A stretch of DNA of 64,000 nt from Guillardia theta CCMP2712 (taxonomy: Eukaryota > Protista > Cryptophyta). Under the pieces are notes generated by a model. The model was not told the DNA's origin and ran no database searches. It saw nothing but the letters and a program-made list of their open reading frames with translations. The stretch is taken from the NCBI RefSeq assembly GCF_000315625.1, contig NW_005434644.1, positions 316,973 to 380,972 of the forward strand, in the 5' to 3' direction. Below are positions 251 through 7,159 of the stretch, piece by piece; position 1 is the first letter of the stretch, and each line of letters opens with the position of its first letter. The position numbers were made by a program, and so were the translations under genes.

Positions 251-406
251 GGAGTGCAGGGGTATTACCTTGGGGTGGGGTGTCAACAAGTACCGGTACG
301 TTTCCCATCACTGTACTGTTTTTGTAAAGGTGGGGTATAGGGGGGCATTTGTTGAGGGGGTACCCTTACCTGGTGTGCATACGCCGAAGTTCCTTTAATC
401 GACAAA

Positions 407-426
407 AGGACTCCCGAAGGAGTCCT
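407..426. other. Perfect subterminal hairpin at the putative left end
   Basis: AGGACTCC-CGAA-GGAGTCCT, an 8-bp stem starting 8 nt after the left TTAA. Confidence 0.7.
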
Positions 427-667
427 GGACCAGCATGACAGGGGTCATTGATAGGTTTCAATCACCCATCCAATGGGGCTGTATGAGGGTCTTAAAAAAG
501 AAAAAAAAATCTTCCCTCCTCCGACGGAAAGTTTGTGGCACTGCTCGTTTCATCTTCCCGCCATTACAGAGTTTGCGGTCCGACAATACACTGAAACGAT
601 GGTAATGAAAAAAATGTAGCGACTACCTGCTATCTAACATGGTTTCGCCAGACTAACATACTATAAC

Positions 668-2733
668 ATGCCGAGGAAGAGAAAACGAATTACAGATGAT
701 TCAGACAACGGTCAAGAAATAAGTTATTCAAAACCATTCACGAGAGTCGTCAAATGTGGGTTATACTCGAGACTCAAGGTAGAGAACAGATCGATTTTAG
801 ACGTGATCGACAGATGGGTATTACATATCAGTCAGATCACATCAAGAGGCAGTATGATATTCAACTGTTTTCTGATATGGGGCAGGGATACAGGGAATTT
901 ACGATATGTAGTAGATGAAATCAAGAGAGCCAAATCGACCTTTTTCTGGAATGTTTTTACACTTGGAATGGAACAACATAGCCGTACAGATAACAAGTAT
1001 CCAACTCTACAACGTTTCTGGTCAGAGAAAAGACATCTTTTCGTTGATTTATGTAGAATTCGAGGAGACTCGCAAGCTATTGTATTCGCTGCAAATCAAT
1101 ATGGAACGAATTTCTACCAAGACCTGAAAGCAAATTTTACAAACCGATTGGAAAAGTTCATTGCCGAATTCTGCAAAGGAGAGTTACATATTAACCATCA
1201 GCAAGAAATCGAAGACGTGAAGAATGTATTGTTTCAAAGGAAAGATTACGAGTTGAAGACAGAAGTGTTTAACAGGAATAATTCACAGCAGATAGGAACC
1301 TTCATCGACCATATGAAACAACTAATTGGATTATCGGGGGACGAAGATCTTTTTAGTTTCAAATATGACAAATTTGATCATAGGTTGCAGAAAAATCTGT
1401 TTGAGATAATCGAGACACACATGTTCATGTTGAAGTTCTTCGAAGATCGTGGTCTCTCGAAAAAAACATTCAAGGCAGCACCAATGTCGAAATTCGGCAG
1501 AAAACATCTAACAATCGATAATGATGTGATGTATTACATTTTGAAAGAAGCGAACAGTTTGAAACCGGGAGAAGATAAAAAATCGTTCATGAGAATAGAT
1601 CAAACTTTGGAGAACTCTAGGAATTTCAGAAGGATTTTCGACTGTTCGAATCTGTTCAGAGATCAGAGAGAGGAGATTACAAGTATCACGACAGACGGTG
1701 TATCGGTTTGTTTTCGCTTCACGTTGATTATCAAAACAATCGATGGACTCGAACAGGAACCTTCATTGCGCACTACCAAATGGCTTGCCGATAGAAAAAG
1801 GGCTGAACGGAAATCGGCGAAGAAGATATCAATATCATACAAAGTATTACATGAAAATTCAGAATACCAAAGAGAGATCGAAGAATGTAAAAATTGCCCA
1901 AGGGTAATTGCGATCGACCCTGGGAGGAGCGTCATTATATCGGCCGTCGAACAATTCAGAGATGATCAACAAATAATCAGAAAAAGATTTCAGTTTTCGA
2001 GAAAACAATATTATCACGAGTCACATCTGAATCGCAATAAAAAGAAAAGAAAGACGTGGGATCAAGATATTCAATCGACATTGCACTATCTCAAGGGGTT
2101 CTCGAGTAAGTCTGGCGGCAGTCTATCAAGATTCGAAGACTATCTTCTTGCAGTTACAAGTCATTGGGAGGAGTTAACTTCGCATTATTCAAAGCGAAAA
2201 TACGCCAGGATGAAATTCGACATCTACATTTCGAAACGAAAGTCAGTCGACAGGTTTATCCGTACAATGAAAGGAAAGGGAGAAATAGAACCTGTTATCG
2301 CATATGGAAATGCAAGGTTCCCGTCTACAGGACGTCGAGGAGAAAGGCCTGTACCGCCGGGTCAGGTGGATAAGAAGAAGATTCGAGAATCACTACAGAG
2401 TCGTAGATGTTGACGAATACCGTACTACCAAGTGCTGTAACGATTGTGGTTCTGAGCTCGATGTGCTTCGACGGATTGAAAATACAGGGAACGAACCAGA
2501 CGAGACCTGTAGGTTGAAAACAAGGAAAAGTGAAGTACGAGGATTGAAATTTTGCAGATCATCGAGGTAATATCAAGTTTTGTATACTCCTGTAATTCAC
2601 CTTTTCATCTAACTGTTATCGTGACAGCTGTAAAGGAAAGCCGATCAAATCCAGGGACTTGAATGCTGCACTGAATATACTCACTTGTTTCAATGTGTTT
2701 CCTGAAAGACCGAATCACCTACGTCGCCCCTGA
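668..2733 (+). CDS. Fanzor (probably Fanzor1-type) TnpB-like RuvC nuclease, ~666 aa reconstructed; frameshifted in this copy
   Basis: RuvC-I VIAIDPGR; VIAYGNARF; after a 4-nt frameshift at 2357-2360, VRWIRRRFENHYRVVDVDEYRTTKCCNDC (catalytic Glu plus Zn ribbon); intron 2567-2627 then joins RGLKFCRSSSC to KSRDLNAALNIL (RuvC-III) and RPNHLRRP*. N-terminal MPRKRKR NLS. Segments 668-2356, 2361-2566, 2628-2733. Confidence 0.92.
2567..2627 (+). other. Spliceosomal intron within the Fanzor gene
   Basis: GTAATA...CTAAC (2609-2613)...GACAG, 61 nt. Removing it restores the second Cys pair and RDxNAAxNI. Confidence 0.88.
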
Positions 2734-2944
2734 GGTGAATTCAATGATTGTTGTCGCCCCCTCCCTACCCAGACTGCGTCCCTCGGGACTCGATGCCTAA
2801 TTCCCTGCCTGCCTGCCTGCCCGGTGCCTGCCTCCATTATGATCCGATGTTTACGACATGTGATCATTGAAGTGACTGACTGGCATCATTTGGTAGGATT
2901 CATGTAAGGCTCCAACAACATCCGAAGACAATTTGGCAAAAAAA

Positions 2945-3125
2945 AAACAACTGCCGTTGTATGACGGAGAGTCGCGGCTCTCAATCATACGACGGCAGTT
3001 CTGTGCGAAAACTTAGTTCGTCGTTCAGAAGGGTATTCACATATTCCGTCACCGTGACATCATGAGGGAGAGTACCCGTGGTAGATAGATTCGTGGCGTT
3101 TATCTATTAAGTGGATTCCTAAACC
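2945..3125 (+). ncRNA. Candidate Fanzor omegaRNA scaffold (to ~3110) plus flank-derived guide (~3111-3125)
   Basis: Long stem 2949-3000 (AACTGCCGTTGTATGA/TCATACGACGGCAGTT, one G-U pair, inner GAGAG/CTCTC). Stem GGGTATTC/GAGTACCC 3031-3077 with a G-U pair. Terminal TAGATA/TATCTA stem 3082-3106. Lies downstream of the ORF at the element end, as expected for TnpB/Fanzor. Exact ends unknown. Confidence 0.65.
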
Positions 3126-3470
3126 TAAACCCCTCCTAGTCCGGGCCCGGCAGGGAGTCCGGCGGGGCGCCGCCCGGCGGCAACTTGCTTCGGATCATCG
3201 GATGGGCCGGGCCCCGGCCGCCCGGCCGCCGCAGGTGATACCTCTTCCCCGCTATGACCACGTCAGTTATTAAAAATGAAGAAAAACCTTGGCATGCAGC
3301 TTGGCATGGCATTTTGCTGCCAAGGGGGAGAAAGGGGAATGGCGGCGTACAAGTAATTGAGGAGCAGAAATCAGCAGCAAAGAAAGAGTTCGACGGCATC
3401 AAGATGTTTTATTTCGGTAAGAGTGATCTGATGTGATCAGAAGATTGTTGCCACCTATCACAGTCGAACG

Positions 3471-6042
3471 ATGAAAAGAGAATATTTGGATCCCGATACC
3501 ATAACTCCTCGTCTCCCTCTTCCTTACCGGATGATAGACAATCTGATCAGATCGCTGGTGGAAGAGGCTCTGGAGCAGACGAGGGACGACAAGGAGCAGG
3601 AGAAGGCGATCGATAGCGTATCGGCAGTGTTCGAGTACCACCAACGGAAGGATATCATCCTATCACAGGCCAGCAGCGATGGCCTCCTCGTGTTTGTCTG
3701 TACGTCTTCTGGCTCCCTTGAGTGCATCAACTCGCTGCGGGGAGCACAGGTCGGGGAGCCGATAGTTCTGGGGGAACCCGCTACATGCCTGACGCTGAGC
3801 TCGGATGGAAGGGCTCTGGCGGTGGGGCTGCGTTCCAAGGTGAACATCCTGCAGGTGATGAAGGACTCTCCTTTCTTGAAGCACTTGTTGAGCATCGAAA
3901 CACGGGGAGTGCCGAAGAATTTGGCCTTCTCCTCAGACAGCACTGTGTTCGTGGTGATTTCTGAAGCCGAGGAGCTTGAGCTATTCAGGATCGCCCTACC
4001 AGAAGTTCCCGTTGTCGAGGAGGAAGAAGAGGCTAAGAACACATCCTCTGAAGCCAGTGGAGAGAAGAAGGAGGAAGCAGAGGGCGAGGAGCTAGTGCCT
4101 ACCATGAAGGATCCGGTGCGAGTGCTGCGGCTCAAGTGCAGCAGGGAAAAATGCAAGAAGATGTTTTTTCTCGGGCTGGCGCCAAAGATCAGAAGAGTCG
4201 GCGAGCTAACAGGAAGAGAGTGTCGTCACCTCAACATCGTCAACGTCGGCACCAACATCCTCGAGAGGTTCGACATTCCGTTGAAGGAGTGGGAGGACGC
4301 AGAGGGCAGCGAGGCGAAGGGGTTGGCGGACGTGTCTATTACCTTGCCAAACCTTGTGACGACAGGCGCCATGGACGACACGACGGCCATGCTGATCATC
4401 GGGATGAAGAACGGGAGCAGCATCATCTGGAACAACCTGCTGAACTCCCACCACGCCACCTTGAAGAAGCACAAGGGCGCCGTCACCTGCTGCGCCTTCA
4501 CCGGGTACTCGTCGGACAAGGAGGCAGTCCGTGCGATCACATGCAGCGAGGTCTGCCGATCACCCCTGGTGCTTCCCTGTGCTGATGATGCTTATTGAGC
4601 AGGACAACTCCATCTACATCCACAACCCCGTCGACGGGAGCATACACCACGTCTACCGGGATGACCATCTCAGGGCAATCGACCTGGTCTGCCCGACCAC
4701 GATCCCTATCTTCCTCCTCGCCTCCGTCTCTCTCCATCAAGTCTGGGTGTTCAGCATCGACAGGAAGGAGGTCGCCGCGACCCTCAAGATGCCCTCCGAC
4801 ACCCTGCGTGCCAACATCAACATCTGCACGACTGGCGGGTTGGCCGGCGAACTCCTTCCCGTCCTTAGCTTGATTCAGAAGCCAGCGGTAGAGGAGGGAG
4901 GAGAAGGAGAGAAGGAGGTGACGGACGACAGCGAAGCCCCCAAGGCAGAGGAGGAGTCGACGCTGCTCGCGTACCGCCTCATCGACGTGTTGAAGATCGT
5001 CTACCCGGACATGGTCCGAAAGCCGCCAGGGCAGTGGATGCAGACGTCAGCGGAGGAGACGTACTGGCAGCAGAGGATGCCTGCGTTTGCGGGGAGCGAG
5101 GCTCCTGCTGTGTCGGAGACGTACCTGAGGTAGGAGGAGAAGGGGTTGTAGAAGGAAGGCAGCGGGGGAAGGTTGGTGTGGTGGGGGTCAGGGTGGAGGG
5201 AGAGGAGGAGGAGCCGGTATGAGAGGGAATAACGAGTTCTCCTTCAAGGCAAGCCCAGCAGGTGTCAGGCCTTGCAGGCGGCAAGTCTCCTCTTCAGAAG
5301 CAGGGCAGCCTAAGAGGCGAGTCCCCTCACCTTCCCCGCTCTTCTCCCCTACCAGCCGGGGTAGCGTCCCCCTTGGAAGTTCACGTTGACCGAGCACACA
5401 AGCGCAACTCCATGGTGGTCCAGCCGACGCAGGTGGCGCGTGCGACGGGGTGCCGGGGGGGTCTGATGTGCGAGCAGGAGACGATCAATCCGATGCTGAG
5501 GAATCGATCGCTGGGGACTTTGCTGTCGAGGAAGAATCAAACTGGCAGGTTCATCCTCCTAACTTCTCTTGTCCTCTTCCTCCTCTTCCTCCTCTTCCTC
5601 CTTCTCCGCCCCCCCCCCCTCCCCACCACCCCCCCCGCCTTCTCCTCCTTCCAACTCAGAGTCCTCACCTTTTTAGCCCCGTGTTGCCCTGCTGCTCGTC
5701 CTCCCCGCTCCCATCCTCCTCTACCCGCACCTGTGTCTCTGACCTCCTCCTCCGGCTTGACTTACTCTTCTTCACTCAGAAACTCAAAGTCTCCGCAATC
5801 CAGCGCTGCGGACTCGTTTCATGTTGTTGTTCGTATCTTTCCCTGCTGGTGAGCTGACAAGAACTCCAGGTGGCGAGTCGGTCGAGCGGGGCGTTGGCTG
5901 ACGCGGGAAGTGGGGGAGGAAGGCCGCCGAGTGCTCGCAAGGACGGCGGTTCTACTCCAGTCCTGGGCAAGGTAAACACCAGAGGAACTGAATTGGGAGG
6001 GGCGGGGAGGAGGAGGAGATGGAGGAGATGGAGGAGGAGATA

Positions 6043-6112
<70 letters not shown>

Positions 6113-6761
6113 TTGATGATGATGATGATGATGTTGATGATGATGATGTTGTTGTTGTTGATGATGATGCTGATGGTGGTGGTGGTGGTGGTGGTGGTGG
6201 TGGTGGTGAAGATGATGATGATGATGATGATGAGGAGGAGGAGATGAAGTGTGATTCTATGCAGGCGCAGAGGCTGAAGAGCGCGAGAAAGGAGAAAGAA
6301 GTGATCACGCTAGCGGAAGTCAGGTGAAGTCTCCTCCCCGTCCAGGGCTGGTCTGACGAGCTCGCAGCTCCATGAGGAGCTCGATTGCTGAGAGAAGCTA
6401 CAACGATCATGTGGAGATCGTCATGCAGGAGCTCAGGAAGCGACAGGTAAATCTGAAGCAGGGGAGGAGGAAGGGAAGGAAGGGAAAAGAGGAGGGGAGG
6501 AGGAAGAGAAGGAGGGAAAAGAGGGGAGGGGAAAGAAAAGGAACGAAATGAGGGAAGGTGTAATGAAATGAACGAGAGGAGCGGAGCAAGAAGAGAAGCG
6601 AGGGAAAGAGAGGAGGGGAGAAGAAGGAGGAAACGAGGTGGAGGTAGGAAGAGGAAGGAATGGGAAAAGCTGATCATCGATTCTGGTAGGAAGAGCGGTT
6701 GACCCTCAAGGCCCATCGAAAGAAGAGAGCAGAAGAGATTTTGACCTCGTTCAACGGATGA
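3471..6761 (+). CDS. WD40-repeat protein, WDR93-like (multi-exon)
   Basis: N-terminal RLPLPYRMIDNLIRSLVEEA resembles the WDR93 LPQPYRMI motif; WD repeats (LKKHKGAVTCCAF, CLTLSSDGRALAVG); probable last exon EERLTLKAHRKKRAEEILTSFNG* ends at 6761. The true start may lie upstream. Confidence 0.7.
6043..6232. repeat. (GAT)n/(GTT)n/(GGT)n intronic microsatellite
   Basis: Direct reading. Confidence 0.95.
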
Positions 6762-7159
6762 TCTCTGTTCTCCTCCCGTTTCGTTTTTTTTCCATCCTAT
6801 GTATGCCTTTTCCAAACCGTCCCCGTCTCCTCCTGCCCACCTCGGTGCACCCCCCTCTCTACCCCTCCGCTCGTCCTCGCTGGAAGTTGCTGGAAGTGGC
6901 TTGACAACTCTCGATCTATCTTCTTCGGACACCGTAGCTGTCATCATTAACTCCATTTTCTTCTCAACGACATTCGATGCTTTTTAAAAGTACTTGTGGC
7001 AATATACATGAAAAGTTCTCACTCAACCGGTGATGTTCTGCCGTTCCTCTTTCCTCCATCCTGTTATGCGGACCGATCTTGTCCTCCGTCTCCCCCACTG
7101 TCCGGACTACTTCAGCATACCACAGATCAGCGGCGATCGGGCTGTGACAGGTGCATTGC

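Follow-up and report, generated by a model that had tools for sequence, protein, structure and literature searches.

A probable inactivated copy of a multi-copy Guillardia theta element with a Fanzor1-type nuclease gene

Guillardia theta is the source of one of the three structurally solved Fanzor1 proteins, GtFz1, an Asn variant with which no editing was seen in human cells. The third catalytic residue of that protein is Asn, N658 (PMC11423790), its target-adjacent motif (TAM) is TTAAN (PMC10432273), and the two G. theta Fanzor loci listed in the supplement of the latter paper, the only ones there, both belong to the GtFz1 family. None of the papers searched mentions a G. theta Fanzor beyond that family. 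Fanzor proteins have a rearranged RuvC-II, in which the canonical Glu is replaced by Gly or Pro and an alternative conserved Glu lies downstream, near the zinc ribbon (PMC10530073). Here we describe a further G. theta locus of this kind, contained in a stretch of 64,000 nucleotides (nt) of contig NW_005434644.1 ('the window', to which positions below refer unless a contig is named). Window positions 391-3110 very probably hold an inactivated copy of a DNA element that is young, non-autonomous and present in multiple copies, and whose sole gene would encode a Fanzor1 of 666 amino acids (aa), that is, a TnpB-derived and predicted omegaRNA-guided RuvC DNA endonuclease. The coding region of this Fanzor1-type protein, 668-2733, contains two interruptions, one intron and one 4-base insertion.

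Fold, catalytic residues and gene layout

The relationship to Fanzor1 proteins was assessed through sequence profiles and predicted structures. At E<=0.001, a profile built from five sequences retrieved 5,746 library proteins; at E<=1e-30 it matched 689 library clusters, for the most part over the full length and with 550-700 aa. An 82-sequence profile compared with the PDB matched solved Fanzor1 proteins only: SpuFz1 (E 1e-31), PpFz1 (4.6e-28) and GtFz1 (1.7e-20). The value for SpuFz1 and the 689 clusters put the match far beyond chance. Single-sequence searches of the PDB with two related G. theta families, B and C (described below), gave no match, so that a profile was needed; a word-based protein search returned three proteins only, none of them named, and an exact look-up gave neither accession nor annotation. 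Pfam comparison of the three window pieces yielded nothing beyond the TNB zinc ribbon (PF07282, Cas12f1-like_TNB), with E values of 0.0014 for a window piece and 2.3e-4 for a paralog, both below the Pfam cut-off. The structure alignments to Fanzor1 proteins take in the TNB region.

An AlphaFold2 model of the intact exon-1 product of the window family (hereafter family A; 631 aa) had a pLDDT of 85.7 and a pTM of 0.86. Superposed with VIA-align, it gave Z values of 26.5 for SpuFz1 (504 residues), 25.5 for PpFz1 and 22.4 for GtFz1, these matches spanning 470-520 residues, while the next-best structures were ISDra2 TnpB (9.5), Cas12f (~7) and the mimivirus Fanzor2, ApmFz2 (6.2). A full-length model of family B (pLDDT 91.6), with Foldseek TM scores of 0.69/0.74 to SpuFz1, ranked the structures alike. 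Comparisons by hidden Markov model and by structure with TnpB, SpuFz1 and GtFz1 therefore agree on an RuvC/TnpB-type fold of the Fanzor1 kind, and the separation in Z between the three solved Fanzor1 proteins on the one hand and TnpB and Fanzor2 on the other bears out the preference for Fanzor1 expressed in an earlier note on this DNA. As judged from these profiles and models, the protein belongs with the TnpB/Cas12-type RuvC nucleases, among which it falls in the eukaryotic Fanzor1 group.

The profile alignment to SpuFz1 pairs IDPGR with IDPNK, DEFRT with DEYKT and NRDlNAA with NRDM (D606). All 82 relatives have D417, G547 and E582, and their RD-NAA-NI motif varies very little. The canonical RuvC-II position is occupied by the invariant Gly (AYG, G547), with E582 placed 35 residues further on; in the 82-sequence alignment this pair matches the Fanzor rearrangement (PMC10530073), as had been proposed from the shifted Glu of the window sequence. 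D417, E582 and D642 would presumably form one active site.

The longest open reading frame (ORF) of the gene, 668-2413, comprises 581 aa and includes the NLS-like (nuclear localisation signal) sequence MPRKRKR, read at the N-terminus as claimed earlier, a long helical N-terminal half and IDPGR. The full protein had been assembled in the earlier note from the segments 668-2356, 2361-2566 and 2628-2733, and translation of these does give 666 aa with all the named motifs located. The first segment ends in GRRGERPVP; the second, like the second-frame ORF at 2304-2570, carries VRWIRRRFENHYRVVDVDEYRTTKCCNDCG...CRSS; and exon 2 reads S-CKGKPIKSRDLNAALNIL..RRP-stop (TGA at 2731-2733) once the exon-1 bases 2565-2566 (AG) are joined to 2628. 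The coordinates of the segments were accordingly sound and only the accompanying statement on frame needs amending, since the third piece requires this 2-nt carry-over from exon 1 and, read literally in frame 1, runs into stops.

The two breaks between the segments differ in nature. The gap between the second and third is a real spliced intron, its joint 2566>2628 being present in an RNA contig of run X1 at a depth of 7.2. A further joint, 2734>2897, in contigs of runs X1 and X2 defines a second intron, which begins 1 nt past the stop codon and separates the ORF from the predicted omegaRNA region. The other break is a frameshift caused by GCCG at 2356-2359 (equivalently CCGG at 2357-2360), which in the alignment of 11 copies is private to the window copy, so that the four extra nucleotides named beforehand proved exact. 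Intact copies read ..GERPVPVRWIRRRF.. at this site and the paralogous families read GEKSVPVKWIKRR. The resulting truncation falls before E582, the zinc ribbon and D642, with both catalytic residues thus lying behind the frameshift. This insertion is the sole disabling lesion in the window copy, which is a pseudogene by virtue of a private frameshift mutation; further variants specific to it are C at 2492 and an extra A at 2938. Coordinates of the features are collected in Table 1.

Table 1. Features of the Fanzor1 element and its gene, in window coordinates
Feature	Position	Strand	Basis
Whole repeat unit, 2,720 bp (base pairs), window copy of the Fanzor1 element	391..3110	+	blastn/MAFFT against 10 near-full copies
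Left subterminal perfect 7-bp hairpin, GGACTCC-CGAA-GGAGTCC, lying 17 nt in from the left end	408..425	+	Kept in copies, one substitution in L004
Exon 1 before the frameshift: NLS-like N-terminus, REC/WED, RuvC-I	668..2355	+	Translation; model of intact paralogous copy
NLS-like MPRKRKR	N-terminus	+	Sequence alone
RuvC-I IDPG, D417	1916-1918	+	
Private 4-nt insertion GCCG, frame-shifting; premature stop at 2411-2413	2356..2359	+	Without counterpart in 10/10 other copies
Exon 1 after the frameshift: E582, first zinc-ribbon half (CCNDC)	2360..2566	+	Translation; Pfam; aligned to SpuFz1 DEYKT
Alternative RuvC-II Glu, DEYRT, E582	2415-2417	+	
Zinc-ribbon cysteines: CCNDC (exon 1), then CRSSSC		+	
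Spliceosomal intron 1, 61 nt, GTAA..ACAG, phase 2	2567..2627	+	RNA contig joint; GT/AG retained in 11/11 copies
Exon 2: second Cys pair, RuvC-III RDLNAALNI, stop	2628..2733	+	Spliced translation of intact copies; consensus nRDlNAAlNIl; SpuFz1 NRDM (D606)
RuvC-III RDLNAALNI, D642	2656-2658	+	
Intron 2 in the 3' untranslated region, 162 nt, GT..AG	2735..2896	+	RNA contig joints; dinucleotides checked
Predicted omegaRNA scaffold: long hairpin 2950-2999, terminal hairpin 3079-3109, end TTAA	2897..3110	+	Fold, position
Right flank, 66 bp (would-be guide region)	3111..3176	+	Identical to flank of the C29 copy (C29:422223-422288)
Private 4-nt insertions by copy: window GCCG; L002 CTGC; L014 CACG, CCAT, GCCA	2356; window-equivalent 2520; 755, 1745, 2859		

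Copies, junctions and transcripts

Copies of the element were sought in the 87.1 Mb, 669-contig genome by a six-frame search followed by blastn and MAFFT. In all near-full copies, of which there are 11 including that in the window, homology extends from 391/392 to 3109/3110, with identities of 98-99%, and the copies are embedded on at least 11 nuclear contigs. The right end is carried by ~14 copies. Spliced translations show four of the 11 near-full copies (on contigs C23, C111, C29 and C87) to be intact at 666 aa and seven, the window copy among them, to be broken, the remainder of these by other frameshifts, deletions or an assembly gap. A genome search for intact copies, as proposed earlier, thus found four sister genes. 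The rarity and value that had been implied for the window copy are not supported: the copy is a pseudogene, its family has four intact members in the same genome, and there is consequently no need to repair it.

The left flank ends in TTA in 10/11 copies, the exception being the window copy. The next base, A or T, recurs as the final base of the element in 9/11 copies (A..A in six, T..T in three), and the right ends of copies read TTA(A/T). A 4-bp TTAA/TTAT target duplication is the reading that best fits these junction sequences. The element has no terminal inverted repeats; a 12-bp hairpin at the right stops 1 nt short of that end. There are no ORFs of at least 100 aa in the unit outside the Fanzor gene's own reading frames, and the ORF list of the unit is in agreement with the earlier note that it lacks an IS607 serine recombinase. 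The 66-bp right flank of the window copy is 100% identical to that of the C29 copy (L005) and has no other occurrence in the genome.

Several individual copies have their own peculiarities. In L002 (C40, element 187078-189797) the 11-mer ACACCTAAAGT is found on both sides, followed on the left by AATTA and lying on the right directly after the element. The right end is kept in 5'-truncated or internally deleted copies (C36:78961-78991, C53:368854-369566, C13:42211-43346 and C1:720916-721520), and one of these is a solo 31-nt fragment of the right-end hairpin.

The 3' 214 nt of the unit have a folding energy of -70.8 kcal/mol (z -5.07), equalled by 0/200 shuffles. A contig of run X1 covers 2895-3110 and extends a further 194 nt, into flanking DNA of the C40 copy, indicating that transcription reads through the right end. 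The terminal motif GTTTANCTANTA is common to families A and B, and Rfam has no match in the 3' region of family A. An omegaRNA of family A is predicted here from position and thermodynamics. By analogy with SpuFz1, GtFz1 and TnpB, the 3' ~200 nt of intact copies would be transcribed through the right end into the flanking DNA, and the read-through transcript would give rise to an omegaRNA with the flank as its 3' guide. The nuclease would then cut DNA in which TTAA/TTAT is joined to the flank sequence, i.e. the empty target site; the same analogy predicts TTAA/TTAT as the TAM, with the right flank after it serving as guide. The transposase that would mobilise the element is not encoded in the unit.

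Relatives at 26-29% identity (L047-L062, L039) are found on large metagenome contigs of 60-240 kb that are AT-rich and densely packed with genes. On one of these the Fanzor1 gene adjoins that for the small subunit of ribonucleotide reductase (RNR), a gene typical of giant viruses. These metagenomic relatives have a conserved 3' RNA of ~100 nt with covarying stems, ending in GSTGTA, which is likely the omegaRNA of a virus-borne Fanzor1 clade.

Elsewhere in the window, the neighbouring host gene at 3471-4598 (+) gives weak WD40/beta-propeller matches, and a 334-aa ORF at 5952-6956 (-) is of low complexity, composed mostly of Ser/Pro/Leu runs.

Alternative readings and relation to other G. theta Fanzors

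A number of points weigh against the interpretation of the locus as an inactivated copy of a Fanzor1 element with a predicted guide RNA. Convergence of the catalytic triad rests on the SpuFz1 alignment and the full-length family B model, the family A model being without exon 2. The junctions of the window copy are non-canonical, with no left TTA and with the 66-bp flank held in common with the C29 copy; end bypass, templated repair or mis-assembly may lie behind them. RNA-seq cover of the ORF seems to come in large part from the antisense strand: four introns of the minus strand, GT..AG there and CT..AC on the plus strand, lie at 1803-1867, 1920-2157, 2224-2291 and 2628-2684, and are seen in X1/X2 contigs, with the joint 2223/2292 found also in raw RNA-seq reads of run X13, making three runs overall. 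A covariance model derived from the conserved, covarying ~100-nt 3' RNA of 10 of the metagenomic relatives had no match in families A or C, recovering its own clade only. The omegaRNA, the TAM and cleavage in the window family stand as predictions made by analogy. Lastly, there is a small chance of an assembly error at the 4-nt insertion, around which, when four 31-mers of a 93-nt query were sampled, no public run contained more than two.

The last of these points leads to the alternative that fares best, although we consider it very unlikely: that the window copy is truly intact, its four extra bases being an assembly or sequencing error, and that the locus would encode a working Fanzor1. Besides the 31-mer counts, this would fit the RNA contigs over 2356 (runs X1 and X2), all of which are without the 4 nt. 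However, RNA or DNA contigs without them may derive from the 10 other copies, and rare variants are dropped by Logan contigs. The insertion is, furthermore, not an error of the homopolymer type, and comparable insertions occur in other copies: in all, three copies of this AT-rich element contain five copy-private, non-templated, GC-rich insertions, each of exactly 4 nt, which suggests a real mutational process. An explanation of these insertions as scars of TTAW-guided cuts was tried and rejected, since distances of 10, 14 and 19 nt at 3/5 sites, compared with a background of ~10%, are not significant.

That the gene belongs to a domesticated host family, and not to a mobile element, is highly improbable. 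Introns, an NLS-like N-terminus, the lack of transposase and inverted repeats, and weak purifying selection would all suit such a family. As to the last, 16 nonsynonymous changes at 1592 sites and 9 synonymous changes at 406 sites (ratio ~0.45) separate the copies, along with 24 at 709 noncoding sites, and the smaller number of changes in the coding sequence than outside it is weak evidence of a protein under selection during spread. Domestication is hard to reconcile with ~14 near-identical copies that have sharp common boundaries in different flanks, with TTA(A/T) kept at both junctions, with the many decayed or truncated copies, or with a GC content of 41% in the element, 15-20 points under the 58-62% of its flanks.

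We give practically no weight to a Fanzor2 or a prokaryote-like TnpB (a passenger of IS607 or IS200/605, or contamination), for although the ends are superficially IS200/605-like, with no inverted repeats, with subterminal hairpins and with a fixed tetranucleotide at the left flank, the Z values are far lower for ISDra2 TnpB and the mimivirus Fanzor2 than for Fanzor1, there are two spliced spliceosomal introns and copies on many nuclear contigs, and a search for an IS200-type Y1 transposase (PF01797) was negative for G. theta although it did match control genomes. An element of the Fanzor2/IS607 type was rejected on its own account: the protein is 666 aa long, the unit holds no ORF of at least 100 aa beyond the frames of the Fanzor gene, and ApmFz2 superposes poorly. 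A search of the genome for a Helitron Rep, run without a positive control, gave no match. PiggyBac-like DDE genes (PF13843, above cut-off) are present at C1:917360-918118, C21:234111-235178 and ~10 more places, with no tie to the unit.

Equally negligible is the possibility that the window gene is a member or diverged copy of the GtFz1 family, which shares its organism, its Fanzor1 fold and a similar TTAA-type flanking motif: GtFz1 (XP_005840014) aligns with the window family by BLASTP over 51 residues only, at 35% identity, around the junction of RuvC-II and zinc ribbon; it has N658 in place of Asp; it lies on contig C7; its omegaRNA overlaps the end of its ORF, whereas the window family has two introns and 377 nt past the stop region; and the profile is nearer to SpuFz1 than to GtFz1. 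The placement on C7 follows from the native GtFz1 guide printed in PMC11423790, whose single genome match, at C7:896590, agrees with the coordinates given for NW_005434667 in the PMC10432273 supplement. Whether the window gene is of the GtFz1 family or a new one had been left undecided in the earlier note; the sequences now place it in a separate family. The distance of this family from each solved Fanzor1 protein is about the same, and it is an uncharacterised but typical Fanzor1 family.

Two other families accompany it. Family B (L024-L030, e.g. C78:48134-50223) has a 642-aa, intronless gene with a D-E-D triad in ~9 copies at 99% identity, with tandem repeats of ~88 nt upstream and 161 nt after the stop; one copy, outside the window, is at C30:446292-447866. 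Its protein is 31-36% identical to that of family A. Family C (L021, C72) encodes 639 aa, again with a D-E-D triad.

Besides GtFz1, the G. theta genome contains at least three more families of Fanzor1, namely A, B and C. With its D-E-D triad, introns, intact copies and predicted TTAA/TTAT motif, family A offers a natural comparison to GtFz1 within one genome, and is one more candidate compact editor. For annotation, the locus is to be labelled as a Fanzor1 pseudogene inside a repeat and not as a host gene. Knowledge of how Fanzors work is unchanged by the window family.

A bolder proposal, which we think unlikely, goes beyond the reading of the locus as an inactivated element copy. It would make family A a currently mobile Fanzor1 element of undescribed architecture, with neither inverted repeats nor transposase, with IS200/605-like subterminal hairpins and with a TTA(A/T) duplication at both junctions, spreading by right-end bypass or nuclease-triggered templated repair and not by ordinary cut-and-paste. 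If this were true, the window copy, with its precise left end devoid of TTA and its right end continuing through 66 bp of C29 flank, would be a genomic footprint of the spread of a Fanzor element.

Comparison with known systems

The nearest described system, both by profile and by structure, is SpuFz1 of Spizellomyces punctatus (PDB 8GKH, 9CEU-9CEZ). The two proteins agree in their REC/WED/RuvC/TNB order and in the D...E(DEY-T)...D triad and are of similar size (~640 aa in SpuFz1, 666 aa here), and both are borne by multi-copy elements with a 3' non-coding RNA region, which in the window family is predicted. Their identity is ~17% only. The window element lacks inverted repeats and has TTA(A/T) junctions, whereas inverted repeats and a CATA TAM are features of the elements that carry SpuFz1. 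The window family differs also in its 162-nt intron past the stop codon and in that its omegaRNA is only predicted.

GtFz1 (PDB 9CER-9CET) comes from the same genome, has the Fanzor1 fold and a TTAA-type motif and, like the window element, shows neither inverted repeats nor transposase at its locus. It is a protein of 690 aa, intronless in the characterised locus, with a D-E-N triad and two loci listed in the supplement; in the window family the corresponding features are 666 aa, two introns, a D-E-D triad and ~14 copies.

CrFNuc, the Fanzor1c of Chlamydomonas reinhardtii, and other intron-bearing Fanzors (PMC10530073), compared here by description only, resemble the window family in being algal, in having introns, multiple copies and an NLS, and in their rearranged Glu. 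CrFNuc resides in Helitron2 elements with asymmetric inverted repeats, whereas the window genome gave no Helitron Rep in the uncontrolled search mentioned above.

Finally, ISDra2 TnpB and the IS200/IS605 elements share with the window family the core RuvC/TNB fold, the subterminal hairpins and the lack of inverted repeats. The predicted logic would also be alike, with a 3' omegaRNA that extends into the flank and a fixed motif upstream of the left end serving as TAM. The window family departs from ISDra2 TnpB in its much larger REC (666 aa as against ~400 aa for the whole protein), its rearranged Glu, its introns and NLS-like N-terminus, and the absence of a Y1 TnpA from its genome. Moreover, the first and last bases of the window unit co-vary in the manner of a 4-bp target duplication, while IS200/605 makes none.

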